Positions 21,483-62,807 of a DNA stretch of 64,000 nt are shown piece after piece. Below the pieces are notes generated by a model, which had not been told where the DNA came from, did not search any database, and saw only the letters and a program-made list of their open reading frames with translations. Each line of letters starts with the position of its first letter. Positions within the stretch are counted from its first letter, which is position 1. A program made the translations under genes and the position numbers. The stretch lies in the sequence record MF360958.1, one strand, 5' to 3'.

Positions 21483-22064
21483 ATGATTATTATGTCTATG
21501 AGAAAACATATTGATTTAATAGAAAATGTGCAAAATTCAACTAATACAAATCAAAAAGTATCACTTACTGAAGATGATATAAGAGAAATAACTACAGACT
21601 TAAAAAATGATTTAATGAGAGCTGTAAAAAAACTTACTAATAAAGTTTCTGAAAAACTAAATTCATTATTTAAAGGTAAATTGTTTAAAAATAAATTACC
21701 CGGCATTCCTATGAGTAAAGCAATAGATTTATACAGTATGTTTGTTGGTGAAGGTTCAAATTACGAATATTACATGCATTTAAGTGATCGTGATGTAGAA
21801 AAATTTAAAAAAGAAGTAAAACAGTATGACATGGAATATACAACTGAAGATAATATGGATTTATTTTATGGCGCTATACATGTTACTTCTGATTTGGAAC
21901 ATAGGTTTTATAGAGCGTATAAAATTCCAGTCGCAAATTATATAGGAGCTTTTGCTATAACACGCGATAAAGAAACTGGATATGCTAATGCATACGTTAA
22001 ATTATTTAAAAATGTTGATACCGGGGAAGAAGTTTCTTATGATTTTAGGTTTTTCGGTGAATAA
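21483..22064 (+). CDS. Hypothetical late protein, possible head-packaged protein
   Basis: Late promoter; N-terminal MRKHIDLIE leader. Confidence 0.65.
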   Translation: MIIMSMRKHIDLIENVQNSTNTNQKVSLTEDDIREITTDLKNDLMRAVKKLTNKVSEKLNSLFKGKLFKNKLPGIPMSKAIDLYSMFVGEGSNYEYYMHLSDRDVEKFKKEVKQYDMEYTTEDNMDLFYGAIHVTSDLEHRFYRAYKIPVANYIGAFAITRDKETGYANAYVKLFKNVDTGEEVSYDFRFFGE

Positions 22065-22556
22065 TAAGCATTTTATAGAAGTGTATACTGCCTACTGTAA
22101 AGACGAAACATTCTCCAAAGAATGCTATCCATGCTCCATATACAAACCCGTTCACAATCCATATGAAGGTTGTAAGAAGCATCATAAAACGTAGCTGTAT
22201 ACACCTGAGAACCAAAATAGACCAATGGTTCCTGTGACGCCTGTGAGAGCGGATACCCAATCGACACTTGGTATAATAAATGGAAGGATAATCGATAGTA
22301 TTATAAAAAATATACCTATCATTTTAGATTGTGTTACAAGTGAGGTAAGCACTCTTAATGATGAAAATAACATCATTGCTGCACTTATATACATTCCTAA
22401 GAGGATGAAATAGACAGCACTTATAATACACGATACACATAGAAGCGTTTTAGCATTAACGTCTGTTTTGCTGAATAATGCTAACCCTAAAATGAAAAAT
22501 CCTAGTACACCTATAAGTTCAATATAATAAGAAGCAATAATATCAAGCATGAACAT
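22045..22556 (-). pseudogene. YgjV-family inner-membrane protein, frameshifted by an apparent 2-nt (GT) insertion near 22200
   Basis: Joining the two frames restores ...FWFSG-IQLRFMMLLTTFIWIVNGFVYGAWIAFFGE, in register with YgjV G..MR...W..HN..GS..E; about 169 aa when repaired. Confidence 0.6.
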
Positions 22557-22586
22557 ACTTTACTATATTTTAACAGTATGTTCAAC

Positions 22587-22766
22587 TTATTCCTTACTAA
22601 TATAATTATTGAAATAAAATTGTAGAACGTTTCTCATTCTGGCGAGTTTAATAAAAGCAAAACGTGAAGTTTTAACCATTATTTCTGCTTCACGCAGAGC
22701 ATCTAAGTGATTTTTATTTTCTTCAATTATTTCATTACTTCCTCTTAATATATCATTAATTTTCAC
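22587..22766 (-). pseudogene. 59-aa internally deleted remnant of an ART-like array gene (below the ORF-track cut-off)
   Basis: GTG start: VKINDILRGSNEIIEENKNHLDALREAEIMVKTSRFAFIKLARMRNVLQFYFNNYISKE; family N-terminus fused to the type-B EIM.K..RF C-terminus. Confidence 0.7.
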
Positions 22767-22779
22767 ACTATACCTAAAT

Positions 22780-23679
22780 TCATTCGTTTAAAATGTATAC
22801 CTTCCAGTAATAATTAATTATCTTATCTATTCTAAATTGTGGTATCAAAACAAATTGTTCGGTTTTGATCATTATTTCCTTGTCACGAGGAATATTACTT
22901 ATATCATCTGTGATTTCAATATTCTCAATATATTCATTAAACATTTTTAAATAATCGTTAATAACAAACATAAAGCTACTATAAATGATATCGATTATGT
23001 CTTCATCATTAGTAATATGCTTTTTAATAACAGTTTTTATTTTCTTTTCCTCTAGCGAATATCGATTAATATAATCTATTAATTTATAAATATCACCCCG
23101 TAGTGTAAGTAAGAATTCATTTTTGAAAAAATCTGAATTAATATTTTTATTACTTTTAAGCATTGTTTGTCTTATTTCATTAATAATATGTTCTACATCT
23201 ATAACGTCAGATATACTATATTGAGCAGCAAAATCTCTTATATAAGGATTATAATAATATGTTGTATTCCCAACGGGTATTATATAGTACGGTTCGCCAT
23301 ATTCTAGTACCCTATGTTTATTTTTATAAGAGAATAATAAACTTCTAACTGGTTCCCCTATTTCATCTTTCGCAATACTGTTAACATAATTATGAATAAA
23401 TGGTTGTGTATCTTTTGGTGAACGTCTATATTTAAATTCATTTATTACGGGATTGTTATAAACTTTTTCTCGACCATGAAATAAATTATTTTGATTTAAC
23501 TCATCTAAAAGTTTTCCTAGTTTATTATCATATTCTTTAGAACTCGTATCTGTAGTGCTTAAACCTTTTAAATATTTTTCTATTAAAGGTTTATAATTTT
23601 GTTGAAAGAATTGAGTGTTAAATATAAACTCGTATTTTTCTTTTAGGTTATCTTCTTTTAAAATATCATTAACTTTCAT
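22780..23679 (-). CDS. ADP-ribosyltransferase-like protein, type B copy 3
   Basis: MKVNDILKE leader; LFHG; R..PKDT..IHN.VN; VRSLLF...EYGEPY; KEIMIKT.QFVL. Confidence 0.6.
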   Translation of the reverse strand: MKVNDILKEDNLKEKYEFIFNTQFFQQNYKPLIEKYLKGLSTTDTSSKEYDNKLGKLLDELNQNNLFHGREKVYNNPVINEFKYRRSPKDTQPFIHNYVNSIAKDEIGEPVRSLLFSYKNKHRVLEYGEPYYIIPVGNTTYYYNPYIRDFAAQYSISDVIDVEHIINEIRQTMLKSNKNINSDFFKNEFLLTLRGDIYKLIDYINRYSLEEKKIKTVIKKHITNDEDIIDIIYSSFMFVINDYLKMFNEYIENIEITDDISNIPRDKEIMIKTEQFVLIPQFRIDKIINYYWKVYILNE

Positions 23680-24637
23680 AACCTTCCCTTCTTTTTATTT
23701 CATCCACCACATCATCAAAAGCAAATCTATTAATAAACAATGTTTCTTTTGTATCAAGCATACATTCTGAATAAAGATAAATATCATTTACATTTTGTGT
23801 AGATTTAATAGTATCAATGTAATTTTCTTTTATATTAGTATAAAAGTAACTTTTAATAAATTCTATTATATTATTTTGTTCATCATCCATAATTTCAATG
23901 ATTAAATCTTCAACATAGCTATATAAAATAGTATCGTTCTTACTATCCGATATATTAGGTTTAAATAAATGATTATACATACCTTTAGATATAGATTGCT
24001 TAATAGTATTATAAGAAGATTGTTCCCCTTTAATAGCACGTGAATAATGATTAGAATGGAATGGTATGTAAAATTTTCGAAATGAGGAATCGTTAGAAAG
24101 GTTTGAAATAATATCATTAACATTATGAGTCAAGTATTGGTTTAGTTTGTATTTTGTCTTTGATGTGGATTTCTTGATATATTTTGTGATTTTGTAATAA
24201 ATGTCTTTATATAATTCTTTAAAATCAAGAACATTATCTTTATCATTATAAAAGTCATCTATTTGATCTGAATAGTATATTGTATAATCATATAATGGAA
24301 TAATAACATATTCGAATTCGCCATATATATTAGCTCTAGCCGGTGTTGAAGAAACGAAAAGTTTACTTCTTATTTTTGAACCAAATTCTTTCTCAGACAA
24401 TTCATTAACAATATTATGGATTGTCGGTTCGGTATCACGTGGTTTTTCTCTATCAGTAATGTCGTGTAGTGCGTAAATACCCACATCTTTATCAGTACCA
24501 TGATATAAATTTTTTCCATTGATCATATTCTGTTTGTTAATATTGTAAAATTTTGTATCTTGAATGATATCCATCACTTCATTGATTTCGTCTTTACTCA
24601 ATTTATTTTTACTTTCAAATAGTTGCTTAATTTTCAT
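23669..24637 (-). CDS. ADP-ribosyltransferase-like protein, type A copy 3
   Basis: MKIKQLFE leader; LYHGT; REKPRDT; IRSKLFVSSTPARANIYG; YSECMLD. Confidence 0.62.
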   Translation of the reverse strand: MKIKQLFESKNKLSKDEINEVMDIIQDTKFYNINKQNMINGKNLYHGTDKDVGIYALHDITDREKPRDTEPTIHNIVNELSEKEFGSKIRSKLFVSSTPARANIYGEFEYVIIPLYDYTIYYSDQIDDFYNDKDNVLDFKELYKDIYYKITKYIKKSTSKTKYKLNQYLTHNVNDIISNLSNDSSFRKFYIPFHSNHYSRAIKGEQSSYNTIKQSISKGMYNHLFKPNISDSKNDTILYSYVEDLIIEIMDDEQNNIIEFIKSYFYTNIKENYIDTIKSTQNVNDIYLYSECMLDTKETLFINRFAFDDVVDEIKRREGYES

Positions 24638-25549
24638 TGTTGGTCCTTTATATAATGTTCTAGATAATACTTACCAAGCTCAAAAAATAAATCGGTAGGT
24701 TCTTCAATTCTATTTTCCATTGCTAACAATACAAATCGATTCGTTTTTGCCATAACTTCTACATCATCAGGAATATTAGCCATGTTTTTTGTTGTATCAA
24801 CATCTTCCAGATAATCATTTAATAATTCACGTTTGTTCTCAAATATTGATTTGATATGATTAAAAGCGCCTTCAATGTATTTTTTTTTCAATATCATACT
24901 TTTTCATTCTTTTATAGATGTTTTTTAATGATTCATCAGAAAAATCATCTGTGTTTTGTTCTATATAAAATCTAATATCATTAATAAAATCAATTAATAA
25001 TCTTCGTGTTTCTTTATTTTCATGTTCATTTGAATATTTAAAAATAGCTTTAATCCAATCAGGATAGTTCAATGTATTACTTGATAAATTAAGATCAACT
25101 GTTAAATCATTAATATTTTTATTATAGAAGAATTTCGCATGATCTATTGGAAAAAATATATATGGTTCTCCATATTCTGCTGCGTTATGTATGCTATTTG
25201 TTATATAGAATAAATTTCTTATAGGTTCACCTAGTAATTGTTTTGATTCCTTATTTATATGATTATGAAATAAGACCATCGAATCTTTAGGCATTTGTCG
25301 ATAACGAAAAGTTAATATTTTGTTAGTATATTCCTCCGGTTTTTGTGAACCATGATAAAAGAGATGATCTGTTAAGTTATCGTTGAAAGATAAACTTTTA
25401 AGTTTCTTAATTAAATTATCTGAACTTAATTCTTTATCATATATCGGTTTTAAATAAGTTTGAAAATAATCACCTTCGATGATAGTTTTAAATATATCAT
25501 TAATATTGTCTTCATTATTGTTTTCTATAAGTATATCGTTAATCTTCAT
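24634..25549 (-). pseudogene. ADP-ribosyltransferase-like protein, type B copy 2, split by a +1 frameshift at an A9 run (24880-24888)
   Basis: True start MKINDILIE at 25549; FYHGS, PKDS, EYGEPY in ORF 24872-25576; EVMAKTNRFVL in ORF 24634-24897; A8 would give one 304-aa protein. Confidence 0.7.
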
Positions 25550-26510
25550 TTGTATAATCTCTAATAATATCTTCAATAATATCTGCGTATAAACTTGGTT
25601 TTAAGAATAAAGCCTGTTTTGCATCTAAAATAGATTCTGAAAAATAATCTAAATTCTCAATCTTTTGTGTAGTTTCTATTGTTTCTATATATTTTTTATC
25701 GATATTAGTAACAAAATGATTTTTTATAATTTTGTATATAGTGTCATTTAAAGAATAAATAGTATCTTTTAAAAGTTGTTCAAATAGTTTTAAAGCTTCA
25801 ATAATTTCGTTTTCTTTATCATTATCATCTATATCATCTATATCATCAGCAAAAGTATTTTTAAATAAATCTGTGATTTTACTTACTACTAGATTTTTAG
25901 GTAGTGTTCCTGTTCTTAAAATTTCTATATAATTTTGAGGACTTATTATAGATAAATCTTCAAGGAAACTATCTTTATTATCATCTATAATTTTATTAAA
26001 ATCTTTGTTGATAAGTTTTGAAATATCGTTTACATATTGATGTTTTGTTAAAGCATCATATATTTTTTCAAATATTAAAGATTCTAGTTCATCATAATTT
26101 ATAATAATGCTCAAGTCAGCATAAAGATCACGAATATTGTTTGATTGATAAATGTTATAATCTCCTAGCGGAATGATTTTATAAGTATTAATTCCATAAC
26201 TAGAAGCAATAGAATTATTAGGTGTAATGAATAGTTTATTACGTATCTTTATACCAAAATGCTGTTTAGAAAGTTCATTAACAATATCGTGAATAACAAC
26301 GTCAGTATCTTTAGGTTGGGAACGTTCTGTAATATCAATGATATCCATATTAGATAATGTTACGTCAGTACCGTGATGTAATGCATTACCATCTTTAATA
26401 GATTCAAAATTATTAGTGAAATAATTGCTGTTTACAATAAGATCTTTATAATAATAAAAGTCTTCGTTACTTATAGAATCGTTCTCTTTTAACAGATCAT
26501 TAATCTTCAT
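25539..26510 (-). CDS. ADP-ribosyltransferase-like protein, type A copy 2
   Basis: MKINDLLKE; LHHGT; RSQPKDT; IRNKLFITPNNSIASSYG; FSESILD. Confidence 0.62.
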   Translation of the reverse strand: MKINDLLKENDSISNEDFYYYKDLIVNSNYFTNNFESIKDGNALHHGTDVTLSNMDIIDITERSQPKDTDVVIHDIVNELSKQHFGIKIRNKLFITPNNSIASSYGINTYKIIPLGDYNIYQSNNIRDLYADLSIIINYDELESLIFEKIYDALTKHQYVNDISKLINKDFNKIIDDNKDSFLEDLSIISPQNYIEILRTGTLPKNLVVSKITDLFKNTFADDIDDIDDNDKENEIIEALKLFEQLLKDTIYSLNDTIYKIIKNHFVTNIDKKYIETIETTQKIENLDYFSESILDAKQALFLKPSLYADIIEDIIRDYTNED

Positions 26511-27412
26511 TATTGTTCCTTTATATAGTTTTCAAAATAATATTTTCCTAAAGGTACAAAAACATCATCTTCTGAACCAATAGTTGGTAAAAGTATAAAA
26601 CGATTAGGCTTGGCCATAACTTCACCTTCTTCGGGTATACTTGCGATACTATCCGTTTTCTTTATAAATCCTATATAATTGATAACTTTATCACGAAAGT
26701 ATTCTATACGTTTTTCAACATATCGAGCTATATAATCTGCATAATTTTCATCTAAACCAAAGTCTTGATATATTGAATAGATATACTTCTTTACTTTCTC
26801 AACAGAATCTTTTGATAATGTAATATCATCATTCTCTAATATATATTCCATTATTTGTTTTCTAAACGGCATTGTTTTGTCTGATTTTTTAATAGGTTCA
26901 TCATAAAATTCATGAAATTTAAATAAATTTTGAGCATCAAATGTTATTGTAAAATCAGATATATTAGGATTATAATAGAATTCACATTCATCTATAGGAA
27001 AAAATGCGTAGAATGAACCATACTCTGTTGCTTCTGATAATTCTTTAGTTAAGAATAAAAGACTTCTTACAGCTTCGCCTAGTTTTTCTTTGCTTAGCTC
27101 ATTAACATAGTTATGAATAAATTTAAGTGTATCTTTAGGTTGTTTGCGATATTTAAATGTTAATACTTTATTACTGTATTCTTTATCAAACATTCCATGT
27201 AATATATAGTGTTTAGATAATTCCTTCATTAAATTTTCATTATGTAGTGCTGTTTCAATAGAATTACTGTCTGAAGATTTTTCATTTTTTAAATACCTAT
27301 CATATATAGGTTTCAAGTAATTTTGAAAATAGTAACCATCAATTATTGCTTGATATAAATGATCTTTAGAATCATCTTTTGAATTTTCTTTAAGTATATC
27401 ATTAACCTTCAT
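26510..27412 (-). CDS. ADP-ribosyltransferase-like protein, type B copy 1
   Basis: MKVNDILKE; ILHG; RKQPKDT; VRSLLFLTKELSEATEYG; GEVMAKPNRFIL. Confidence 0.62.
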   Translation of the reverse strand: MKVNDILKENSKDDSKDHLYQAIIDGYYFQNYLKPIYDRYLKNEKSSDSNSIETALHNENLMKELSKHYILHGMFDKEYSNKVLTFKYRKQPKDTLKFIHNYVNELSKEKLGEAVRSLLFLTKELSEATEYGSFYAFFPIDECEFYYNPNISDFTITFDAQNLFKFHEFYDEPIKKSDKTMPFRKQIMEYILENDDITLSKDSVEKVKKYIYSIYQDFGLDENYADYIARYVEKRIEYFRDKVINYIGFIKKTDSIASIPEEGEVMAKPNRFILLPTIGSEDDVFVPLGKYYFENYIKEQ

Positions 27413-28398
27413 TTTGATTTTTTCCTTAAAATTTCCGAAACTATTTGGTTTTTAGCCGTTTTGCTAAGAAACAATACAGATTCAGAATCAATTATACATT
27501 CGGAGTGGTAATCTAATTCAGTTACATATTTTGTTTTTTCAATAGTATCAATGTAATTCGTCTGTATAGCATCTTTAAAGTGTTTATTTATAAGCTCGAT
27601 AATATCTTCTTTATTTTGAATCATTATTTTTTGCACTAACGATTCAAGTATTCCGAAAACAGAATCATCACCGCTTCCATCATCATTAGATACATAATCA
27701 TCAAGATTAATGAAATCTGTGAATAACAATTCATTGAATTTTATACTTACGAAATGAGCTAAATCATAGTAGCTTTGTTCATCGCCATTGAGGATAGAGT
27801 GATAAGTACTTGATTTATGATTAAATAAATATTTATTAAAATACTGATCTTTAACATTTTCCATATAGTTTGAAAAATTAAATTTTAATATTTCACTAAT
27901 ACTTTGTATTTCTTCATAGTTGTTGTTGATAATGCTTTGATAAACGTACTTATGAATTTTACTAGCGATGTTTTTGTATTGTGATATTTTAAAATCATCA
28001 CCATAAAAATCATCTATAGTGTTTGAATAATAGAGCTGATATGAACCAATAGGGTAAACGATATATTTAAACTTGCCATAAACCACCCCTTGGAATTCAG
28101 AAAGCGTAGTAAATAATTTGTTTCGAATTTCTATACCAAATTGTTGTTTTGACAACTCATTTGCAATATCATGTATAGCTTTATTACTATCACGTGGCTT
28201 CTCGCGATTCTTAATATCAAAGTGGCTGATATTTCCGTGATCTACTGTTGTATTATGATAAAGATTGAAATTGGTATTTTTTAGAATCGTATTTTTATTA
28301 TTTTTATAGAATTCGCTATTCATAATCAAGTCAACAGCATAATCAATTTCCTCCCGAGTTATTTTTTTATTTTCATTCAATAAATTATTGATTTTCAT
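27409..28398 (-). CDS. ADP-ribosyltransferase-like protein, type A copy 1
   Basis: MKINNLLNE; LYHNT; REKPRDS; IRNKLFTT...VYG; HSECIID. Confidence 0.6.
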   Translation of the reverse strand: MKINNLLNENKKITREEIDYAVDLIMNSEFYKNNKNTILKNTNFNLYHNTTVDHGNISHFDIKNREKPRDSNKAIHDIANELSKQQFGIEIRNKLFTTLSEFQGVVYGKFKYIVYPIGSYQLYYSNTIDDFYGDDFKISQYKNIASKIHKYVYQSIINNNYEEIQSISEILKFNFSNYMENVKDQYFNKYLFNHKSSTYHSILNGDEQSYYDLAHFVSIKFNELLFTDFINLDDYVSNDDGSGDDSVFGILESLVQKIMIQNKEDIIELINKHFKDAIQTNYIDTIEKTKYVTELDYHSECIIDSESVLFLSKTAKNQIVSEILRKKSK

Positions 28399-28428: not shown

Positions 28429-28436
28429 TATTTATA
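28429..28436 (-). promoter_or_regulatory. Late promoter TATAAATA driving the ART-like array
   Basis: Exact consensus about 30 nt upstream of the 28398 start, GGAG RBS between. Confidence 0.7.
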
Positions 28437-28503: not shown

Positions 28504-28752
28504 ATGAATCTTATCGAAACGGTTCTTATTGAATTTTTTTTGGAAGATGTTGATAAGGATGAATCCGAATTGAAAGAAGAAATCGAAAATATTAATTCTC
28601 AATATAGGGAGATTGATAATTGCTTGCAGTTTGAGCCGGGCAGGCAGTATATGTGTTTAGGTCAAGACGAAATGGGAGATAATATTGTACTCGTATCTAA
28701 ATCTGGCCGGGTTTTTAAACTTCCATACGATGAAGATTATATTCAACAATAA
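28504..28752 (+). CDS. Hypothetical protein, tandem duplicate 1
   Basis: Paralog of 28817-29080 (FLED.D.DESELK.EI..INSQY..ID..LQFEP...YMCLGQ). Confidence 0.8.
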   Translation: MNLIETVLIEFFLEDVDKDESELKEEIENINSQYREIDNCLQFEPGRQYMCLGQDEMGDNIVLVSKSGRVFKLPYDEDYIQQ

Positions 28753-28758
28753 TAGTTA

Positions 28759-28788
28759 TTGACAAAATAGTATAATTTTTAGTACAAT
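28759..28788 (+). promoter_or_regulatory. Early promoter TTGACA-N18-TACAAT
   Basis: Near-identical to the promoter at 29077-29106. Confidence 0.7.
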
Positions 28789-28816
28789 GTTATTAATTCG
28801 TTAACAGGAGATAACT

Positions 28817-29080
28817 ATGAATGTTATAAAAACAGTTGCTATTGATATTTTTTTAGAAGATACAGACCGAGATGAATCAGAACTGAAAAGAGAAATTAAT
28901 CGTATTAATTCTCAATACCATGACATTGATGATTCTCTACAGTTTGAACCAGACAAAACATATATGTGTTTAGGACAAGTTGGAATAGGGGATGAGATTG
29001 TGCTTGTGTCTAATACTGGTCGAGTCTTTAAACTTCCTTATGAGGAACATTATATTATTCATCATTGGACTTTTTATTGA
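28817..29080 (+). CDS. Hypothetical protein, tandem duplicate 2
   Basis: Paralog of 28504-28752 with the same AATTCGTTAACAGGAGATAA leader. Confidence 0.8.
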   Translation: MNVIKTVAIDIFLEDTDRDESELKREINRINSQYHDIDDSLQFEPDKTYMCLGQVGIGDEIVLVSNTGRVFKLPYEEHYIIHHWTFY

Positions 29081-29135: not shown

Positions 29136-29621
29136 ATGCATATTGATCAACTTATCGAAACACTGAGTAACAGTACACGTCAAAGCCCTGAGATGAAATT
29201 TGTTATTGACTATCTTGAAGGTCAAAAATCTCAAGGTATTGGTGAAATGAGTGATGGTAAAGTTCTTGAAGTTATGAACTATGTAGCCAATCTTCAAGAA
29301 CAAACTAACATCAAACGTGTGAATGAAAGTTCGCAAGAAGTTAGTCATCATATTGCAAAACTTAAAGATCTTTCTGCGGATGATGTTCTTACAGGTTTCA
29401 TTCGAACAACACGCAAAACCGCTATTAGCTGTCTTCAACAGCAAATTGATAGTGATCAAGCTGATGGAAAATCCACTGAAATGAAGGAAGTTATTAAATA
29501 TGATCTGGAACTGGAAGAAAAGATTAGCAATCTTCCTTCCAAAGCTAAGCAAGAAATGCTTTCAGATTATGGTCATAAGCTTTTCGACGGTTTTCCATAT
29601 CAAGATAATCAGGAAAAATAA
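29136..29621 (+). CDS. Hypothetical early protein
   Basis: AGGAG RBS, own promoter, 161 aa. Confidence 0.75.
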   Translation: MHIDQLIETLSNSTRQSPEMKFVIDYLEGQKSQGIGEMSDGKVLEVMNYVANLQEQTNIKRVNESSQEVSHHIAKLKDLSADDVLTGFIRTTRKTAISCLQQQIDSDQADGKSTEMKEVIKYDLELEEKISNLPSKAKQEMLSDYGHKLFDGFPYQDNQEK

Positions 29622-33416: not shown

Positions 33417-34475
33417 ATGAGTACCAGCTTAGACGAATACTTTCAAAATAGTGATGAATCTACTCGCGAACAAATTCTTGAGAACATTATCTTTGAAAAT
33501 CATGGATATAGTAACCATGATTTAACAAAAATTAGTCTCAATAATTATTACATTAAAAAGATTATTGATGGTGATATTAATAATAATACGAGAGCGAGTA
33601 TTTTTGGCATTATTTCCTTAATGTTTGCATTAGGTGAAAGCCTATGTGATGAAACATGGAAAATGGTATTTGAGAAAAAGCCTCGTTGTTTAATGGTGTA
33701 TCCTCAAGCGCGTTCAAAACCGTTGAAAGATGATATTATTGAGTATGGTTTAAGAAAATATTATGAACATGGCGAAAAAGTCTTAAACTCTTTTCCAGAT
33801 AGTCATTGTATTAAAGAGATTTTTGAAATTCAGAAATCCGTTAATGATGAATTCTATAAAATCATTATTGATAATGAGCCGGATCTTATTCCATTTTTGG
33901 AAGATTTACCACAATCGATTATCGATTATTTTGTTAATCTGATGAATGACAATGGCTATGGTTATGATTTTTCAAACATTAACGACTATAGTGAAGATGT
34001 ACTTTGTGAAATCATAGAAGCATTTCCTTTTGCGTATATTCTTATTTCTAATCCTAGTGATGAAATTAATAAGATAATGATTGATCATAATATATTTTAC
34101 ATAAAAATTTTAAGAAATCAAACAGATAATTTCTATTCATACGTACTAGATAAAGAAATACGACGTGTGGATATTTTTAAAAGTTTTGTTAATCCTTCAA
34201 AAGAGGTTCAATATAAAGCTATTGGTATGAATCCCTCTTCAATATCGCATGTTAGCGATCCTGATGAACATTCTCAGCAATTAGCTATTGAATACAATCC
34301 TGAAAATATTGTGTATATAGATGCTCCTTATGAGCATATACTGTTAAAAGCGTTAAAAACTGAATGGAATGTGTCTGTATATGAGATTGTTTGTAATAAT
34401 ATCCAAAATTATAGTGATGAATTCAGGCATTACTTTAACAAGTTAAAACTGGAACGAGGCATTCCGGTAGGCTAA
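33417..34475 (+). CDS. Helical-repeat protein, KLKL-tail family member 3
   Basis: NPS.E.Q..A repeats; W...Y...FRHYFNKLKLERG; TTGAAA-N18-TATGAT promoter upstream. Confidence 0.8.
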   Translation: MSTSLDEYFQNSDESTREQILENIIFENHGYSNHDLTKISLNNYYIKKIIDGDINNNTRASIFGIISLMFALGESLCDETWKMVFEKKPRCLMVYPQARSKPLKDDIIEYGLRKYYEHGEKVLNSFPDSHCIKEIFEIQKSVNDEFYKIIIDNEPDLIPFLEDLPQSIIDYFVNLMNDNGYGYDFSNINDYSEDVLCEIIEAFPFAYILISNPSDEINKIMIDHNIFYIKILRNQTDNFYSYVLDKEIRRVDIFKSFVNPSKEVQYKAIGMNPSSISHVSDPDEHSQQLAIEYNPENIVYIDAPYEHILLKALKTEWNVSVYEIVCNNIQNYSDEFRHYFNKLKLERGIPVG

Positions 34476-34499
34476 TATTGCGACTATAAGAGAAATTAT

Positions 34500-35597
34500 A
34501 TGGAACATGATACGACACTTAACGATTATTTTTATTCTTGTGATGAAAAACAACGTGTGAGAATTCTTCATGATATTATTTTTGAAGATAACGGGTACTA
34601 CTGTGATGACCTTAGAAAGATTGATCTAAATGAACATTATATTAACAAAATTATCGAGTTTAACAGTACCGTATCCACGATAAACTTAATAACTACTGTT
34701 CCTGTAAGCAAACTGACTGACAATAATTTAAAGAATATATTCAAACATAACCATCGTTTCATAAAAGTATATTCTTATATATTTGAGAAACCGCTTTCCG
34801 AAGATGTTTTTCAATATGCATTACAATGTTCTTTCGATAATGGTGAAGTTATAGCAGATCATCCAGATCCAGATTATTTAGATAATGATATAAGGCGATT
34901 TATATCACTTCATGAACCTATTAGTGATGATTCAAAAAAGATTATTATTAAAAACAATATAGTATACTTACCATTTTTAGAAGGTTTGTCTGAATCTGTG
35001 AAAGAGTTTACATGTGGGTTTGTTAAAAATAACATAGATTCAAAATACGATTATAGAAATATCAATAAATTTTCTCAGGATGTTCAATGCGATATTGTAC
35101 GTCAATATCCCTATCTGTATGAACTAATTGATAATCCTAGCGAAGCTGTTAATCGAGAGTTGATTGAAGCAGATCCTTATTGGATTAGTGTTGTCAATAA
35201 TCAAACGGGTGATTTACAATTAAGGGCGCTGTATATACTTTATGGAAGTAATGGTATTATTGGTACGCCCATATTTTCTTTTTTCAAGAATCCTTGTAAA
35301 AATGTTCAATATGAAGCAGTACGGTTGGATCCAATTCAAATATCGTTGATTAAAGATCCAAATTATGATATGCAGAAATTAGCAGTTGAGCATAATCCAG
35401 ACTGTATTAAACATATCAAACATCCTTATGAAGATATTGCGCGTGTTGTATTAGATAGTGGTTATTGGAATGCTAGAATATATGATGTTATTAAAGATAA
35501 CATTCATCAATATAGCAATGAATTTAATCATTATTTTAATAAATTAAAGTTGAAATATGGTGATCCTAATAATTTCACAGAAAGATCTACTAAATGA
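34500..35597 (+). CDS. Helical-repeat protein, KLKL-tail family member 4
   Basis: Paralog of 33417; FNHYFNKLKLKYG. Confidence 0.8.
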   Translation: MEHDTTLNDYFYSCDEKQRVRILHDIIFEDNGYYCDDLRKIDLNEHYINKIIEFNSTVSTINLITTVPVSKLTDNNLKNIFKHNHRFIKVYSYIFEKPLSEDVFQYALQCSFDNGEVIADHPDPDYLDNDIRRFISLHEPISDDSKKIIIKNNIVYLPFLEGLSESVKEFTCGFVKNNIDSKYDYRNINKFSQDVQCDIVRQYPYLYELIDNPSEAVNRELIEADPYWISVVNNQTGDLQLRALYILYGSNGIIGTPIFSFFKNPCKNVQYEAVRLDPIQISLIKDPNYDMQKLAVEHNPDCIKHIKHPYEDIARVVLDSGYWNARIYDVIKDNIHQYSNEFNHYFNKLKLKYGDPNNFTERSTK

Positions 35598-35661
35598 TAT
35601 AGGTTGAATAAAGAAGATGAACAATGGTTCAAACATCAGGTTAACAAACAGAAATTAGAGA

Positions 35662-36783
35662 ATGAATTTTATGACTAATATAAGATTGCATAGAGAATTA
35701 ACCGAATTAAATAATTTTTTCAATAATAGCGATGTAATATTTCAACATTATTTTTTGGATAAAATTATTCACCAAATTGATAGTTATAAAGACGACCTAC
35801 TTTCATATGTTGATTTGAGTGATTATTATCAAAAACAAATAATTGATTGTAAGTTGTATAGATCAGATATATTCGCATCATTTAGTAATCTTAACGGTAT
35901 CTATATTGCGCATCATTTTAAAAATTTAACACAAGATAATATATGTTATATGATTGATAAGAATCCATTGCCTTCTTTTATCATACATCATGTTTCAATA
36001 AAAGATGAGAACGTGTTAAAATATTGTTTACAACGTTTTCTGAAATCTTCAAAAAATAGAAGTATTGAATACTGCTCTGATGGTATGTTTGAAAAAATTC
36101 TGCAACAACATTACCCTGTATCTGAAGATATACAACTATTAATTATACACTACTATCCTCGATTTATTATTCATTTTGATGTTGATGATCTCTACCCAAG
36201 TGTATTGAATAAGTTTTATGAAATCATGGGTAAAAAATCGAGTATTGATTTTCGAAATATTAATGATTATCAAGAAAATGCTTTATCTGGTATTGTCTTT
36301 CAATATCCTTTTATATATAAATTTATAAAAAATAAAACATATTTAATCAATAATTCGTTTATTCAAAATGATCCTGATAATATTCGATTCATTGATAATT
36401 CTAGTGAAGACTTACAATTAATGAGTGTTAGAATCAGTGGATGTATTACGTTAGATTATCATTGTAATTCGTTACGTCATATTAATAATCCGTCTGAAAA
36501 TGTTATATGGAAAGCTATTAAATCGAATACTAGATGTATAGAATATGCTATTAATCCTAGTTATGAAATGCAAAAATATTGTATCAAAAGAAATCCTTAT
36601 AGTATAGTTTATATCAAGAATACAATACCAGAAGATTTACAGTTAATTGCTCTGGAAAATTTATGGAATATAGAAAATTATAATCATATATTAAATAATT
36701 TAGGTCCGCACAGTGATTATTTCAATCATGAACTAAAAAAATTAAAGTTAAAAAATGGATATATTGAGGATGGTACTGAATAA
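35662..36783 (+). CDS. Helical-repeat protein, KLKL-tail family member 5
   Basis: LQLIALENLW...Y...FNHELKKLKLKNG. Confidence 0.8.
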   Translation: MNFMTNIRLHRELTELNNFFNNSDVIFQHYFLDKIIHQIDSYKDDLLSYVDLSDYYQKQIIDCKLYRSDIFASFSNLNGIYIAHHFKNLTQDNICYMIDKNPLPSFIIHHVSIKDENVLKYCLQRFLKSSKNRSIEYCSDGMFEKILQQHYPVSEDIQLLIIHYYPRFIIHFDVDDLYPSVLNKFYEIMGKKSSIDFRNINDYQENALSGIVFQYPFIYKFIKNKTYLINNSFIQNDPDNIRFIDNSSEDLQLMSVRISGCITLDYHCNSLRHINNPSENVIWKAIKSNTRCIEYAINPSYEMQKYCIKRNPYSIVYIKNTIPEDLQLIALENLWNIENYNHILNNLGPHSDYFNHELKKLKLKNGYIEDGTE

Positions 36784-37286
36784 TGAGTTACTTAGATGAT
36801 GTTATTTCTAAAACTTGCGAACTTGATGATATAAGTAAAATGGATGACGTTCCTTACGATCTTCAAATGAAGGTTGTAAAACAAAATCCTATGAATATTA
36901 AATACATTAAACATCCATGTGAAGACGCACAGTTTGAAGCTTTTAACCAAGACGTGGTTTCTTGCAGATATATTATAAATCCTACTGAAAACTTCCAAGA
37001 ACATGTTATCAGATGTGGTATGGTACGTTTGGCAAAACGTAATATGTTTTCGTTTTCTAGAAAATCATTAGAGCTTGCTTTTGAATTAGATCCACATTGC
37101 ATTCTGTTTTTTCAAAAGGGAACTTTTATGTCGGATGATTTACAGTTATATGCTATTAAAAATGGTTGGGAATTACGCCTTTATAACGCTATTATGGAAC
37201 AGTTTACTAGGAAAGATGAAGAAGCATTTCATAACGAAATTAAAAAATTGAAGATTGAATTTGGTCCTATGAAAAAATACACTTGA
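36783..37286 (+). CDS. Helical-repeat protein, KLKL-tail family member 6
   Basis: LQLYAIKNGW...Y...FHNEIKKLKIEFGP. Confidence 0.8.
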   Translation: MSYLDDVISKTCELDDISKMDDVPYDLQMKVVKQNPMNIKYIKHPCEDAQFEAFNQDVVSCRYIINPTENFQEHVIRCGMVRLAKRNMFSFSRKSLELAFELDPHCILFFQKGTFMSDDLQLYAIKNGWELRLYNAIMEQFTRKDEEAFHNEIKKLKIEFGPMKKYT

Positions 37287-43693: not shown

Positions 43694-44827
43694 ATGCGAA
43701 TGTTTGAAATTAATAAAAATGAAAATACTGTTTATTATATGATGGCTTATTCAAATCCACCAACAAAAGGTTATGAAAATATATTTGAAAAATTAAAGAA
43801 AATTGCAAAGGATTCCAATCATGTTGTTTTCTTGAGCCCTTATCAAGATGATTTTTTAAACCCTTTAAAACATCATCGAGCATTAGAATATAATATGCGT
43901 GTTTTCCCTAACGTGAAATTTTATCGTAAAGCTGATGTTAAAAATTCATTAGATGCACTGTATTATCTTTCCCAACATTATAATAATATTTATTTGGTGA
44001 CTAATGAAGAAAATATTCAACGCTTTGATCGTTTTTATGAATATGCTTCAGATTGGGGCGTATTTGAATTTGAAGTTATTGGCTTAGATACTAAGAAATT
44101 TGATGTTGAACACATGAATAAATTAGCTCGTGAACATGTTATTAATAATGATTATAAATCTTTTAAGAAAATTATTCCTAGTAATGATGAAAAGCTTTTA
44201 TCTAAATTATATTTAGAATTGCGTAAGGTGATGTTAGGTAATGATTCAGAACAAAATGAGAATGATTCAGAACAAAATGAGAATGATTCAAAACAAAATG
44301 AGAATATTGATACATCATCAGTTAATAAGATTGTGGAATTTTGTAGGAATAAAAATACAGTTTTGCCTGTTTTAAAAGAATATATGTATAAAGATAAACT
44401 TGGGAATGAATATTTAAAACTTAATGAAATAGACTCATCAATAGGTAATATTAACATTCTATTAGATAAAAATGTAGAAAATTTTTCTATTGGAAAAGAT
44501 AAAAAAACAGGAGATGTTGTTATTTTCATGAATGAAAATATTAACAAGTTAGATCGTTTATTAGAATCTAAAAAAGAATTGTTTGAAAAAACACTTAATA
44601 AAGCGGTACAACTAAAAGAAACAACAACAGCAGGTAGTATAGCAAATGTTGCTTCTGGTTTTGGTCATATTATAAAACGTCGAGATGAAGATGTATCTTT
44701 TGTAAAAAATATTAAACAGAATAATAGTTATAATTCTTTACAACAAGCTATGAAAGAATTTATTGATAAATATGGTTATATTGATTCGCAAGCTATTAAG
44801 CGAATAAAACGCGAATTAAATAATTAA
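43694..44827 (+). CDS. Degenerate cytidyltransferase-like (HIGH-family) protein
   Basis: NPPTKGY (cf. NPPT.GH), LNPL...FPNV; C-terminal LKETTTAGSIA motif. Confidence 0.55.
   Translation: MRMFEINKNENTVYYMMAYSNPPTKGYENIFEKLKKIAKDSNHVVFLSPYQDDFLNPLKHHRALEYNMRVFPNVKFYRKADVKNSLDALYYLSQHYNNIYLVTNEENIQRFDRFYEYASDWGVFEFEVIGLDTKKFDVEHMNKLAREHVINNDYKSFKKIIPSNDEKLLSKLYLELRKVMLGNDSEQNENDSEQNENDSKQNENIDTSSVNKIVEFCRNKNTVLPVLKEYMYKDKLGNEYLKLNEIDSSIGNINILLDKNVENFSIGKDKKTGDVVIFMNENINKLDRLLESKKELFEKTLNKAVQLKETTTAGSIANVASGFGHIIKRRDEDVSFVKNIKQNNSYNSLQQAMKEFIDKYGYIDSQAIKRIKRELNN
44240..44302. repeat. 21-bp tandem repeat x3 (NDSEQNE)
   Basis: AATGATTCAGAACAAAATGAG twice plus one single-mismatch copy. Confidence 0.9.
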
Positions 44828-50348: not shown

Positions 50349-50768
50349 ATGTCTAAAATGAAAAAGCGATCCGGTTTATTACTTTTTTACATCGCCCCGA
50401 AGTCGGGCGATGTATACTTTCGTTGTATGATCCCTTCTGATGCTAAATACGGTGGTCTTTCCCCTCAGATCCCTAAAGGGCGCATAGAGGAAAACTATAA
50501 TAAGCGCGAAACTGCTATAAAAGAGACACAGGAAGAAGCTGGTTTATTGATTCATAATTTAAAATGGGTATATCATTTTAGAGATTATGAAGACATGAAA
50601 CTCTCTATATTTTATGGTACAGTAGAAAATCCTTCTGACTTTGGTGATTGGGATTGGGAAACAGAATGGTCTGGTTGGGTTAATTTTGATAAACAATCAG
50701 AATACATTCGCGAAACACAGTATCATATATTCAAAGAAGTATATGATCATATTAAAAAGGAACACTAA
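50349..50768 (+). CDS. Nudix hydrolase 1
   Basis: PKGRIEENYNKRETAIKETQEEAGL Nudix box (K in place of the usual R). Confidence 0.8.
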   Translation: MSKMKKRSGLLLFYIAPKSGDVYFRCMIPSDAKYGGLSPQIPKGRIEENYNKRETAIKETQEEAGLLIHNLKWVYHFRDYEDMKLSIFYGTVENPSDFGDWDWETEWSGWVNFDKQSEYIRETQYHIFKEVYDHIKKEH

Positions 50769-51295
50769 TGCGATTAGATAATGTAGATAATGTAGATAAT
50801 GTAGATAGAATTTTATTTGAGAGTGATCCTGACGAAGTTCACCGTCAAGAATTGGAAAAGACCGGTTTTTGGGGGAAGAAAGGAGCGGGATGTTTGTTGT
50901 ATAGTGTACAAACAGATACCTTTTTATTTCTTCAACGTTCTGCTGTCGTAGAACAACCTCATACATGGAATCTTGCAGGTGGTGCTATAGATCCTGAAGA
51001 AAATTCCAAAAAAGCTGCAATTCGAGAGTTATATGAAGAAACACAAATTAATGTTTCGGAACAAAATACCCACCTTATTCATACCTATAAAGATGATAAT
51101 TCATCATTTGTTTTCTTCAATTTTTTAAGTGTTATTGACAATGAGCAACAACCTGTATTAAATTGGGAAAATAAGGATTACGTATGGGAAAGCATTGATA
51201 ATCATCCAGAGCCTTTACACTTTGGTTTAAAAGAATTTTTGTTTGACCAGAAAGTTCTTGAGAAAATCAAAAATATTATTGACAAGTACCAGTAA
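50768..51295 (+). CDS. Nudix hydrolase 2
   Basis: TWNLAGGAIDPEENSKKAAIRELYEETQI Nudix box; leader MRLDNVDNVDNVDRILFE. Confidence 0.88.
   Translation: MRLDNVDNVDNVDRILFESDPDEVHRQELEKTGFWGKKGAGCLLYSVQTDTFLFLQRSAVVEQPHTWNLAGGAIDPEENSKKAAIRELYEETQINVSEQNTHLIHTYKDDNSSFVFFNFLSVIDNEQQPVLNWENKDYVWESIDNHPEPLHFGLKEFLFDQKVLEKIKNIIDKYQ
50775..50801. repeat. 9-bp tandem repeat x3 (TAGATAATG)
   Basis: Encodes DNV repeats in the Nudix 2 leader. Confidence 0.85.
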
Positions 51296-57332: not shown

Positions 57333-57352
57333 GGCGGCGTAATACCGCCTTA
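57330..57352. terminator. Hairpin between convergent genes
   Basis: TAAGGCGG-CGTAATA-CCGCCTTA. Confidence 0.7.
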
Positions 57353-58204
57353 ATTATTTTCATCATTTAAAAATTCTTCATCTTTTTTAATCTCATTGAT
57401 GATAATTTTAACTGCTTTTTTCCATAAATCTTTATTCATTTCTTTCATTTTATAAAACACATTAGATTCAAAGTCTTCAATAATGTCAGAAAAACGTTGA
57501 ATACGTGCAGATGAATCACCAATAAAATAACGTAAAAGTTGAATTTTATCATTACGATTAAGTTTAGCATTACGTTGTAATGCTCTAATTCTATTTTTAA
57601 AAGTATTATATTCGCTTTTAATCGTAGGAAGAAATTCAGCAGCACTTGTAACATTTTTAATAGCAGTTTCCATACTACCATCAAAATTTGGCCCTGTTTG
57701 TAATTGTTTAGGATCTTTTTTACCAAAACTATTTACTTGTATATAATGCTGTAGTTCATGTTCAATTGTATTCATATATTCTTCTATTAAATATTTTAGA
57801 AATTCTTTCTTCATATCTTTATTGGCCATGAGTATTTTTAAATGTTCTATATTAATTAAGAGAGTATTTGTCTTAGTATCAAATCCTCCATAGTTGTATT
57901 TTCCGTCGGATATAAAACGAATATGAAGTTTATTAGTTTCCATATTATATTTGAAATCGTAACGAGATGTATCTATTTCTGTTTCAAAAACAACATTTTT
58001 TGGATGATCAAAATTGAAAGATTTATATAATTTAGTATATTGGGGGTTATGGTCTATATAATCCATTATACCTAAAGCTTCATTTTCATCATATCCTATT
58101 TCTGTTAAAAATGATATTATATAGGCATATAGAAATTCATTAACTGTTTCGATAAGTTTATGAGGTACATCAATCATAGATTCATATAATTTAGCCAAAC
58201 GCAT
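57350..58204 (-). CDS. HExxH zincin-like metallopeptidase with MRLAKLYE leader
   Basis: YGGFDT...LLINI...TIEHELQHYIQ. Confidence 0.65.
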   Translation of the reverse strand: MRLAKLYESMIDVPHKLIETVNEFLYAYIISFLTEIGYDENEALGIMDYIDHNPQYTKLYKSFNFDHPKNVVFETEIDTSRYDFKYNMETNKLHIRFISDGKYNYGGFDTKTNTLLINIEHLKILMANKDMKKEFLKYLIEEYMNTIEHELQHYIQVNSFGKKDPKQLQTGPNFDGSMETAIKNVTSAAEFLPTIKSEYNTFKNRIRALQRNAKLNRNDKIQLLRYFIGDSSARIQRFSDIIEDFESNVFYKMKEMNKDLWKKAVKIIINEIKKDEEFLNDENN

Positions 58205-59345: not shown

Positions 59346-59355
59346 GGTATGAAAA

Positions 59356-60697: not shown

Positions 60698-61036
60698 TGT
60701 TCTTGATTCTAATGTTTTAAAAGAATCAGAAGGGGCTTTGCCTGATAACAATCCATCTTTACTCTCAAAATAAGCAAAGCCATCTTCTACTGATTTAATA
60801 CGTACTACATCACCTTTGGACATATTTTTAATATTTCCATTAAAGTCTTGGACTATTATATCACAGTTTAACTCATATAATGGATGAACCTTTATTTTGT
60901 TTTCAATTTGACTTAATTTTGTTTCAAGATGGTTGTATATTTTAAATAGTTTTCTAATTATATAATAAAGAAAACTTCCTATTGTAATAGCTGTCCCTAT
61001 CAAACTTAGTATTGTATATAATCCCATAAGATTCAC
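60677..61036 (-). CDS. Single-pass membrane protein with a possible SH3-like C-terminus
   Basis: N-terminal hydrophobic helix; KGDVVRIKSVEDGFAYF pattern. Confidence 0.6.
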   Translation of the reverse strand: MNLMGLYTILSLIGTAITIGSFLYYIIRKLFKIYNHLETKLSQIENKIKVHPLYELNCDIIVQDFNGNIKNMSKGDVVRIKSVEDGFAYFESKDGLLSGKAPSDSFKTLESRTSSYERN

Positions 61037-61137
61037 CTTTTATCAGTTTCTATCAATATTTACCATGATAACTAAAACTATTGACACAATATACAATTTT
61101 AAGTATAGTAGCGTGTAATAAATATAAGGATAGAAAT

Positions 61138-61500
61138 ATGTTTTTATTTCATAAATTAAAATCAAGCACTATCGCATCGTATTGTGTAATATTATTTGTT
61201 TGTATTGTTTTTCTTTCCTTAGTATTTCCTACCTATGCTTTCCCACAAGATGATGATTCTAGCGTCGCATTTTCTTGGGAAAGCTTTGATGAACTAACAG
61301 TTAGAAATATTTGCGAGCATGTTTCAAGTCATAATGATAAAATATATAACCGTGAGATTCTAAGAAAATCTCTTTATAAGGATAAGCGTGAAACCTTGAT
61401 CTTGTGTATTACAGAAGATCGTCAAAATTGGATGGTTTTTCGTTTCCTTGAGAGCCCGTATAATGATGACAAAACAATTGAATTTAAATCCTCAAGATAA
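61138..61500 (+). CDS. Signal/anchor-bearing hypothetical protein (start probably ATG 61138)
   Basis: Hydrophobic stretch ending PTYAF; AAGGA RBS. Confidence 0.55.
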   Translation: MFLFHKLKSSTIASYCVILFVCIVFLSLVFPTYAFPQDDDSSVAFSWESFDELTVRNICEHVSSHNDKIYNREILRKSLYKDKRETLILCITEDRQNWMVFRFLESPYNDDKTIEFKSSR

Positions 61501-61515
61501 GCTAAGGTTTAATAT

Positions 61516-62409
61516 ATGACAGATGAAAATAATAGTATTAATATTATAGATATAACCGATAAACTGGAAAATAAGCGTCAACAAGAAAAGAATGATAAGA
61601 TTATTGAACAATTTGAAAAACAACTTGATATTAGTCCCGGAGAACTTAATAGTTTGGTTAATGATACATTAGGTATTGATATTGATAATGATTCTTTAAG
61701 CGAATCTGTTCAAGAAGCAATGGATCGTGCTGAAATGTATAAGAGTTGGATGAGGAAAAAAGAAAAGGAAGACCAAGAAAAAGGGTATGATCCCCAACAA
61801 TGTTATTGTGAAGTATGCCCTGAACAAGTTCGGTCAGAATCTATTGAATATATTTATAATGACGATGGAAGTTTTTATGAAAAAAGCACAGGTCGTCAAA
61901 ATTATTGTGGTGCAGAAATTGCACAAGATTGTTTGTATAGAATGAAAGAGCCTCCTATTAATACAGTTTCTTATGGTGAGGATATACCTTCCTATAAAGA
62001 AGCATTAAATATACTGGCCCGAAATAATCTTATTGAGCCTGATGATTTTGGCGAATACAATGGAACTGATTTTTTTCGATACAAGAATGTAAAAACTTTA
62101 TGGTTTAGTTTTTGTAAATTACTAGGAAATATGGCTGGATATGATTTTGATAATGAACCTTATGAAAAATCACAATCAATTCACGCAGCTAAAGCATTTA
62201 TGGAAACTGAAATCTATGACTTTAATGATCAACAATGGCAAAAATTAAAGAAAGAATTTAAGAATCAACTTGATTATATTATGAAAAAGAATGGAATAGA
62301 TACTCAATCTAAAGAAGCTCAGGAGGATATACAATACTGTACTGATCAAATTCTCGAACAGTTTCAAGGTATTATAATGTCTATGGCAGCTAAAGATAAA
62401 ACATTTTAA
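61516..62409 (+). CDS. Hypothetical acidic protein with Cys motifs
   Basis: CYCEVC and C...C motifs. Confidence 0.7.
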   Translation: MTDENNSINIIDITDKLENKRQQEKNDKIIEQFEKQLDISPGELNSLVNDTLGIDIDNDSLSESVQEAMDRAEMYKSWMRKKEKEDQEKGYDPQQCYCEVCPEQVRSESIEYIYNDDGSFYEKSTGRQNYCGAEIAQDCLYRMKEPPINTVSYGEDIPSYKEALNILARNNLIEPDDFGEYNGTDFFRYKNVKTLWFSFCKLLGNMAGYDFDNEPYEKSQSIHAAKAFMETEIYDFNDQQWQKLKKEFKNQLDYIMKKNGIDTQSKEAQEDIQYCTDQILEQFQGIIMSMAAKDKTF

Positions 62410-62807
62410 TTATTATTTAAAAAGTCATAGGTATGACGTTGATTGGTTTTTGAAACTATATTGACATATTCTTTAAGCGCGGCTCTTAAATCTTCTTTAA
62501 CAGATTTTTTGTCGCGCTCATTTCCTTCATCGTTTAATGCAACCACATCTACTCTAACTTTATCACCATAATATTCACTTACGTTATACGTATCAATCAT
62601 TGCTTTACGATCATAATAAACGGTTATTTCGAGTGCATCAAATAAAAAATCGTAGTGAAATTTCTTTTTTAAGTCTTCTCCGTATACTTTAATATACGGT
62701 CCTTGCTTTCCACCATATAAATTTTCTTCATGGGGTTGTCGTTTTAAAACGTATTCTGCTATATTATTGATCTTCTGATCGTTGGGTTTTATATCTTCAA
62801 AAATCAT
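62406..62807 (-). CDS. Hypothetical protein, MIFE leader
   Basis: AGGAG RBS; CTAAATA late-like box upstream. Confidence 0.65.
   Translation of the reverse strand: MIFEDIKPNDQKINNIAEYVLKRQPHEENLYGGKQGPYIKVYGEDLKKKFHYDFLFDALEITVYYDRKAMIDTYNVSEYYGDKVRVDVVALNDEGNERDKKSVKEDLRAALKEYVNIVSKTNQRHTYDFLNNN

Follow-up and report, generated by a model that had tools for sequence, protein, structure and literature searches.

A T4-like N-terminal leader as a probable head-packaging address on ADP-ribosyltransferase-like and other proteins of Salicola phage SCTP-2

The window analyzed here, a 64,000-nucleotide stretch of DNA, corresponds to bases 186001-250000 of the genome of Salicola phage SCTP-2 (MF360958.1, 100% identity). 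It contains a tandem array of genes for proteins with a predicted ADP-ribosyltransferase-like (ART-like) fold, which begin with a short leader of the form M-[KR]-[IVL]-x-x-[LI]-([LF])-x-E. The leader is probably a head-packaging propeptide, or address, of the same type as the capsid-targeting sequence (CTS) of phage T4, and is carried by the ART-like proteins as well as by others. The main cargo encoded in the window would be this ART-like family, which is large and uncatalogued. SCTP-2, a myovirus of solar saltern origin, has a 440-kb genome with a G+C content of about 28%, and almost every gene of the window is labeled hypothetical in GenBank. In published phylogenetic trees, its clade-mates are Agrobacterium phage Atu_ph07, Xanthomonas phage XacN1, and the Rak2-like phages (PMC5852040; PMC6102473).

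A tight leader is shared by unrelated SCTP-2 proteins

The leader was analyzed in a set of 517 open reading frames (ORFs) of at least 60 residues, called on the public record of SCTP-2. A first-pass annotation of the window, made from the letters alone, had described the leader as a loose motif, M(K/R)...(L/I/F)xE. In this form the motif occurs at chance level: [LIF]xE is present within residues 1-16 of 125/517 ORFs, compared with 109/517 for an internal control comprising residues 41-56. The tight leader is defined as M-[KR]-x3-[LI]-x-E or M-[KR]-x3-[LIV]-[LIF]-x-E, and thus requires K or R as the second residue, Glu as the eighth or ninth, and an aliphatic residue at P3. In SCTP-2, 21 ORFs carry this leader, compared with 1.07 +/- 1.02 expected from 2000 shuffles of residues 2-15. 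The 98 ORFs that begin with M[KR] include all 21 leaders, whereas only 4 of 367 internal M[KR] sites are followed by the same pattern (Fisher p=6e-12).

The proteins behind the leader are diverse. Once residues 1-15 are cut away, the 21 ORFs fall into at least 14 BLAST clusters, which include the ART-like family, DUF4116-repeat proteins, a weak Nudix match at genome position 291482, a protein with an HExxH motif, and several orphans. All seven tight members in the window have Glu at position 8 or 9 and L or I at P3. Six of these seven are paralogues and therefore count as one family, so that the independence of the observations comes from the rest of the genome, where about 20 more proteins, belonging to a dozen other families, bear the leader.

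The flavor of the leader tracks the phage and not the protein family: it reads MK[IV]N[DN][IL]LxE in SCTP-2, M[RK]W.QL.E in Atu_ph07, and MITFKQFIxE in an unrelated metagenomic phage with a G+C content of 30% (contig Ga0495372_0000182 of JGI metagenome 3300048796, here called L027). The L027 leader, MITFK(Q/E)(F/Y)(I/L)xE, is present on three kinds of protein, namely a Zeta_toxin/AAA_33 P-loop protein of 242 residues with a Walker A motif from about residue 25, the products of three ART-like genes, and a third family with four genes. A second expanded family is located beside the leader genes of L027 (1055-17631) and consists of about 12 small proteins, all of which begin with MNLY(K/N)(F/Y)H..PE(D/E)LHKH.

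The tandem array of ART-like proteins

The array occupies positions 22780-28398 on the minus strand of the window and is organized as follows, together with the promoter-like element ahead of it.

28429-28436, minus strand: perfect T4-type late-promoter box TATAAATA, 37 nt ahead of the gp219 start codon
27409-28398, minus strand: gp219, ART-like, 329 residues, first gene of the array; leader MKINNLLNE, codons 28372-28398
26510-27412, minus strand: gp218, ART-like paralogue, 300 residues; leader MKVNDILKE
25539-26510, minus strand: gp217, ART-like paralogue, 323 residues; leader MKINDLLKE
24872-25549, minus strand: gp216, N-terminal piece of a split paralogue, 225 residues, lacking the strand with the conserved Glu; leader MKINDILIE
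24634-24897, minus strand: gp215, other half of the split copy, 87 residues, matching positions 236-298 of the hidden Markov model of the family and containing DVEVMAK
23669-24637, minus strand: gp214, ART-like paralogue, 322 residues; 8-residue leader MKIKQLFE
22780-23679, minus strand: gp213, ART-like paralogue, 299 residues, last gene of the array; leader MKVNDILKE

The six paralogous genes abut or overlap and read as one operon. Therefore, the box TATAAATA is likely to be the promoter of the whole array. The ORFs of gp216 and gp215 overlap by 26 nt (24634-25549, minus strand), and may represent either a frameshifted, decaying copy or a protein made in two pieces. The six paralogues show 23-35% identity to gp219. 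Among the six, sequence identity is 60% in residues 1-9, compared with 28% over the remainder of the proteins. In the AlphaFold2 model of gp219, which has a predicted local distance difference test score (pLDDT) of 83, residues 1-10 lie outside the fold and have a pLDDT of 43. Additional ART-like copies are encoded at positions 326749 and 366252 of the SCTP-2 genome, and more distant relatives at 282007 and 251808. Divergently from the array, on the plus strand (28504-29080), are the genes of two small acidic paralogues of 82 and 87 residues (MNLIETVLIEFFLEDVDKDESELKE and MNVIKTVAIDIFLEDTDRDESELKR).

Prohead protease gene and late-type promoter boxes

The SCTP-2 genome encodes a protease of the type that trims head proteins in T4. 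Its gene is located between genes for the portal, scaffold-like proteins, and a gp23-type capsid protein, which together form a T4-type head module.

Genome 81165-81803: gp21-type prohead protease (Peptidase_S77), with a PF03420 match at 81228-81677 (85.2 bits, cut-off 27)
Genome 83349-84338: gp23-type capsid protein (PF07068), with the portal gene upstream

Boxes of the ATAAATA type are among the most enriched 8-mers upstream of SCTP-2 genes. ATAAATA is positioned 33-38 nt upstream of the portal gene, the terminase gene, and those leader genes that start operons. The box TATAAATA found ahead of the array recurs 33-36 nt upstream of the portal, terminase, and other late genes. When transcription units were assigned to promoters by a crude operon-to-promoter rule based on consensus matches, 19 leader genes fell in units with a late-type box and 4 in early-like units (p=0.002). 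The first-pass annotation had placed the leader proteins mostly behind late-type boxes, and had named an equal frequency of the motif in early proteins as grounds for refutation; the counts favor it, if weakly, at the level of consensus matches.

Leader-bearing proteins are virion-associated in Atu_ph07

The virion proteome of Atu_ph07 was determined by electrospray ionization tandem mass spectrometry, and is given in Supplementary Table S5 (Attai et al. 2018, PMC6102473). The gp numbers of the table were assigned to ORFs using the printed molecular weights and the gene order, which enabled the mapping of 138 of the 140 entries; gp176 and gp177 remained unmapped. The tight leader is present in 19/135 virion ORFs and in 1/663 other ORFs of Atu_ph07 (p=1e-14). 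When the same rule for choosing start codons is applied to both sets, the counts are 21/135 and 1/663 (p=3e-16). Seven of the eight BLAST clusters of Atu_ph07 leader proteins were detected in the virion.

The relationship extends to the ART-like family itself. The genes of Atu_ph07 gp53-63 form a tandem array encoding homologous proteins of 250-490 residues, the N-termini of which read M[RK]W.QL.E. All of these proteins are in the virion proteome with 12-46% sequence coverage (Table S5), as are the proteins found in Atu_ph07 by the family profile (gp54, 57, 59-63) and gp408. After the removal of residues 1-15, the only matches of the ART-like proteins of the window in Atu_ph07 are virion proteins; those of gp219 are Atu_ph07 gp60, gp61, gp62, and gp408. 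Attai et al. describe the cluster of coding sequences (CDS) 31-76 as encoding new structural proteins of a "hairy" virion, and gp53-63 are listed in this cluster as hypothetical virion proteins (PMC6102473). In the sections and term searches covered here, their report contains no description of the leader, of the ART-like fold, or of a link to a prohead protease. The preparation was partially purified and also held RecA-like, SSB-like, and terminase proteins. Therefore, "virion-associated" is the safe wording for the leader-bearing proteins.

Taken over the whole genome, the packaging address of T4-CTS type proposed by the first-pass annotation survives in the form of the tight leader, for which the protease gene, the at least 14 clusters, the position of the leader outside the predicted fold, the late-type boxes, and the Atu_ph07 virion proteome speak together. 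It does not survive as the loose motif.

Comparison with the targeting sequence and Alt protein of T4

In the T4 genome, the sequence MKTYQEFIAE occurs twice: both ipII and ipIII begin with it, and the DNA that encodes it is identical in the two genes. For packaging, residues 1-10 of the internal protein IPIII are sufficient; positions 4 and 7 are required for targeting, and positions 8 and 10 for cleavage by gp21 (PMC9026906; PMC3012670). The CTS has been seen as the sole conserved part of the diverse internal proteins of T-even phages (PMC9026906; PMC3012670), and its use by T4-like phages to package diverse cargo has already been proposed (PMC9026906).

The SCTP-2 leader shares several properties with the CTS. 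Both span about 10 residues, stand at the very N-terminus, and occur on proteins that are not related in other respects. Both occur in genomes in which a gp21-family protease gene is located beside the genes for the portal, scaffold, and gp23-type capsid protein, and in which late promoter boxes are present; in SCTP-2 the cargo would include host-modifying enzymes, as it does in T4. When the 9-residue SCTP-2 leaders are aligned with the CTS at the Glu, they have I/V, I/L, L, and E at the four key T4 positions. The L027 leaders match all four positions, with F, F/Y, I/L, and E. In contrast, the 8-residue SCTP-2 leaders match only P3 and P1, and MRLAKLYE and MKIKQLFE have K or Q in the place of Phe7. 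The SCTP-2 leader is also shorter than the CTS (8-9 residues instead of 10), and has a different sequence (MK[IV]N[DN][IL]LxE compared with MKTYQEFIAE). It is present on about 25-30 SCTP-2 proteins, compared with three or four in T4, and its putative cargo consists mostly of enzyme-like proteins of 25-40 kDa, whereas the T4 proteins are small and basic.

The Alt protein of T4 is an ADP-ribosyltransferase that is packaged into the head, trimmed by gp21, injected, and modifies the host RNA polymerase (PMC9026906). The SCTP-2 ART-like proteins resemble Alt in being predicted ART-fold proteins, probably made late, with a short putative N-terminal propeptide ending in L-x-E. However, Alt belongs to the Alt/VIP2 group (PMC9503650), whereas the structural neighbors of the SCTP-2 proteins are ARTs of the Arr, diphtheria-toxin, exotoxin A, PARP, and DarT types with a [YF]-[HR]-G motif. 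When the T4 genome was searched with the profile of the ART-like family, nothing matched at E<=1. Furthermore, SCTP-2 has six tandem copies, compared with the single gene of Alt.

Head-packaged ART, Nudix, Macro, and NADAR proteins of myoviruses, together with polyvalent proteins, have been predicted by Iyer, Burroughs, Anantharaman, and Aravind in 2022 (PMC9503650). Their general proposal resembles ours: phage ARTs and Nudix enzymes whose genes lie among those for morphogenesis or late functions are held to be packaged and injected. It differs in that packaging was deduced from fusions to MuF or portal proteins and from gene neighborhoods, not from a short N-terminal address, and neither the Salicola phage nor Atu_ph07 is mentioned (PMC9503650); the SCTP-2 ART-like family has no Pfam model. 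For neither SCTP-2 nor Atu_ph07 did we find a published description of the leader or of the ART-like family. The proposed mechanism, that of the T4 CTS, is already known, and the cargo is new.

Proposed function of the leader and alternative explanations

By analogy with T4, the leader genes would be transcribed late, from promoters of the TATAAATA type, alongside the head genes. The short, unstructured, amphipathic leader would then dock its protein on the scaffolding core of the assembling prohead, and the gp21-family prohead protease would cut after the Glu of [LI]-x-E. The mature enzyme would be kept in the DNA-filled head and could be ejected with the DNA into the host, as are T4 Alt and IPI-III. 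The proteins would be located in the head and not in the tail or fibers, and the ART-like members may have NAD-dependent activity.

Several points weigh against a CTS-type address. Because many of the leader genes are paralogues, counting genes exaggerates their independence, and cluster counts are fairer. Four leader genes are in early-like units, under the crude promoter assignment described above. The evidence from virions comes from Atu_ph07 and not from SCTP-2 itself, and mass spectrometry shows the presence of a protein in the preparation, neither its location in the head nor its trimming. The loss of 8-9 residues is too small to be revealed by the published gel. Finally, the 8-residue forms (MKIKQLFE, MRLAKLYE, and MRWEQLTE of Atu_ph07) lack a hydrophobic residue in the place of T4 Phe7.

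The alternative that survives best is that the leader marks virion proteins as an uncleaved assembly tag, or as a tag for another part of the particle, such as the hair-like fibers of the clade. It would agree with the interpretation of CDS 31-76 as structural proteins of the "hairy" virion, offered by the authors of the Atu_ph07 report (PMC6102473), with mass spectrometry showing presence only, and with the departure of the 8-residue leaders from T4 at Phe7. Nevertheless, an invariant Glu at a fixed distance from the N-terminus, combined with an aliphatic P3, is exactly the type of site cut by gp21, and the protease is encoded. ART-like, P-loop kinase, and Nudix folds are unlikely to be fiber subunits, and the same kind of leader is a tag for the head core in T4. 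We therefore regard a tag of this other kind as unlikely.

Less probable still is that the N-terminus is shared because the proteins are paralogues and addresses nothing, with chance accounting for the hits beyond the ART-like family. Tandem paralogues do indeed make up six of the window's seven tight hits, and some of the other leader families are distantly related to one another (289961 and 332759 in SCTP-2; gp53-59 in Atu_ph07). However, at least 14 clusters without detectable similarity carry the leader where about one ORF is expected, and the 242-residue P-loop kinase that bears it has no space for a second domain. The leader is twice as conserved as the remainder of the protein and lies outside the fold, and its presence predicts detection in the Atu_ph07 virion. 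As judged from the number of clusters, the L027 cargo, the phage-specific flavor, and the retention in most of the best-scoring family proteins from outside SCTP-2, the leader is more than a family inheritance.

It is very improbable that the AT richness of the genome, together with translational selection on the initial codons, produces the leader as a side effect, with AAA- and AAT-rich starts yielding M-K-I-N: the genome has about 28% G+C, MK starts are common (98/517 ORFs begin with M[KR]), and the loose motif is at chance, but the N-terminal shuffle gives 1.07 leaders against the 21 observed, the position of the Glu is fixed, and the same architecture, built from different residues (MRWEQLTE), tracks virion proteins in Atu_ph07, which has 37% G+C. 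A head-packaging address of the T4-CTS type thus remains the probable role of the leader.

Fold and distribution of the ART-like family

The ART-like family is widespread. Because a word-based protein search with the six paralogues returned only the SCTP-2 proteins themselves, and tblastn against a phage collection likewise returned only SCTP-2, an exhaustive profile search was needed to find it. That search identified 3119 cluster representatives at E<=0.001, of which 634 also pass E<=1e-10. Ten of the family representatives were looked up, and all are nameless metagenomic proteins. The retention of the leader was counted in the 143 proteins from outside SCTP-2 among the best 150 of the 3119 representatives. 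Of these, 112/143 retain M..[LIMFV]xE, 85/143 have the Glu as residue 8 or 9, and 114/143 have K or R as residue 2.

No Pfam model scores above its cut-off for the six paralogues and 92 homologues, and the PHROG families matched are exclusively of unknown function. The family has no sequence match in the PDB, and Foldseek against the PDB returned nothing. The ART-fold neighbors were identified with VIA-align alone, and all of their Z-scores are below the safe level of that tool. For gp219, the best of them are the rifampin ADP-ribosyltransferase Arr (Z 5.8 over 87 aligned residues), cholix (4.1), a toxin similar to PE (4.1), and tankyrase (3.7). Gp219 carries a helical insert at residues 133-285. 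A homologue of 210 residues that lacks the insert (P0053) was modeled with a pLDDT of 94, and its leader with a pLDDT of 61. About 25 of the 50 listed VIA-align matches of P0053 are ART-fold proteins, with Z-scores of only 2.5-5.5. They include Arr (5.5), diphtheria toxin (4.3), and exotoxin A (3.5), as well as PARPs, DarT, Tpt1-like proteins, CteC, OspC3, and CopC.

The motif [YF]-[HR]-G is conserved in the family; His48 is invariant in the six paralogues, and H, R, or S occupies its place in distant members. Across 92 sequences, Glu300 of gp219 never varies, and Tyr107 and Tyr282 hardly do. In the predicted models, [YF]-[HR]-G, E300, and the tyrosines are compatible with an ART active site, in which H or R on the first strand, an aromatic residue, and Glu on the fifth strand are expected. 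We consider it reasonably probable, on the basis of the models, that the family is a divergent clade of the ART superfamily. The label "ART-like", which the first-pass annotation had given to these proteins, is supported only at the level of the fold, where Z-scores are low; no curated ART sequence family is matched.

Other candidate leader proteins in the window

Eleven proteins had been listed as bearers of the leader in the first-pass annotation. Every quoted N-terminus is found in the sequence at its place except that of the ORF at 21483. The six ART-like proteins and the HExxH protein carry the leader, Nudix 2 and the 21483 ORF are doubtful, and the remaining two do not carry it. The candidates from outside the array, together with an ORF beside it that had not been listed, are as follows.

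57350-58204, minus strand: HExxH protein, 284 residues; 8-residue tight leader MRLAKLYE, HExxH at residue 149
50768-51295, plus strand: Nudix 2 (Pfam NUDIX, 9e-14); N-terminus MRL-(DNV)3-DRILFE, doubtful member
21441-21450: late-type box GTATAAATAT, ahead of the 21483 ORF
21483-22064, plus strand: doubtful member; L-I-E ends at residue 11 of the product annotated from 21492, and at residue 9 only with a start at 21498
29136-29621, plus strand: ORF of 161 residues beside the array; leader-like MHIDQLIET with His in the place of K/R at position 2

The gene of the HExxH protein has a late-type box about 55 nt upstream. The protein matches no Pfam family and has no homologue in Atu_ph07. The 21483 ORF, quoted as MRKHIDLIE, really reads MIIMSMRKHIDLIE; the quoted form requires a start at the third ATG (21498), and the GenBank start is at 21492.

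Nudix 2 fails the tight pattern as it stands. Its gene contains a 9-nt tandem repeat, GATAATGTA x3 (50777-50803, plus strand), which encodes the three DNV units between MRL and DRILFE; without the repeats, the N-terminus would read MRLDRILFE. The repeat has the appearance of a microsatellite-like insertion within a possible leader. In the comparison with Atu_ph07, Nudix 2 has no virion homologue. The neighboring Nudix 1 (50349-50768, plus strand) has a paralogue at 291482-292012 of the genome (plus strand) with the tight leader MRIKQITE. Both Nudix 1 and this paralogue match Atu_ph07 gp257, which was detected in the virion with 43% coverage. It is plausible that a Nudix-like protein is packaged in this phage clade, although it is not the Nudix 2 named by the first-pass annotation.

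Two of the listed proteins were rejected. The cytidyltransferase-like protein that begins with MRMFE (43694-44827, plus strand; phrog_3041) has its Glu at position 5, fails the tight pattern, and has no virion homologue. The ORF of 133 residues that begins with MIFE (62406-62807, minus strand) has its Glu at position 4 and also fails the pattern; no family and no homologue were found for it. The matches of MRMFE and MIFE to the motif are due to chance.

A protein absent from the earlier list, encoded at 14349-15053 on the plus strand, has a leader-like N-terminus, MKFDQLTDGLLE, with Asp where Glu is expected. A T4 leader with Asp in the place of the Glu is packaged and remains uncleaved. The DUF4116-repeat proteins form a BLAST cluster of 28 members, encoded in the window at 18754-19639 and 33417-37286 (plus strand) and at 29.5-42.5 kb of the SCTP-2 genome. 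The copies in the window lack the leader, and at least six copies at 29-42 kb of the genome begin with MKVKHITQYLFES.

Homologues of ClpX and ClpS are encoded at 6057-7945 on the minus strand, adjoining the genes of a T4-type topoisomerase II, and have counterparts in Atu_ph07. Their sequences suggest that SCTP-2 carries its own unfoldase and adaptor.

Implications for phage biology

Both the CTS of T4 and the prediction, made on other grounds, of head-packaged ARTs and Nudix enzymes precede this analysis. Going further, we suggest tentatively, at less than even odds, that the leader is a cargo code readable from sequence well beyond T4, across phages with a gp21-type protease, and that the ART-like family is among the most widespread classes of phage effectors packaged in heads and injected, and forms a new ART clade. 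If this were true, reading the leaders in its genome would be enough to list the full set of proteins that any such phage injects.

Phage proteins carried in the head act before any phage gene is expressed, and are therefore prime candidates for roles in host take-over and anti-defense. To our knowledge, examples beyond T4, P1, N4, and the phiKZ group are few. Should the leader prove reliable, about 25-30 proteins of SCTP-2 and thousands of metagenomic relatives of its ART-like proteins would become candidate injected effectors, and the leader would provide a simple tool for packing foreign proteins into the heads of jumbo phages.

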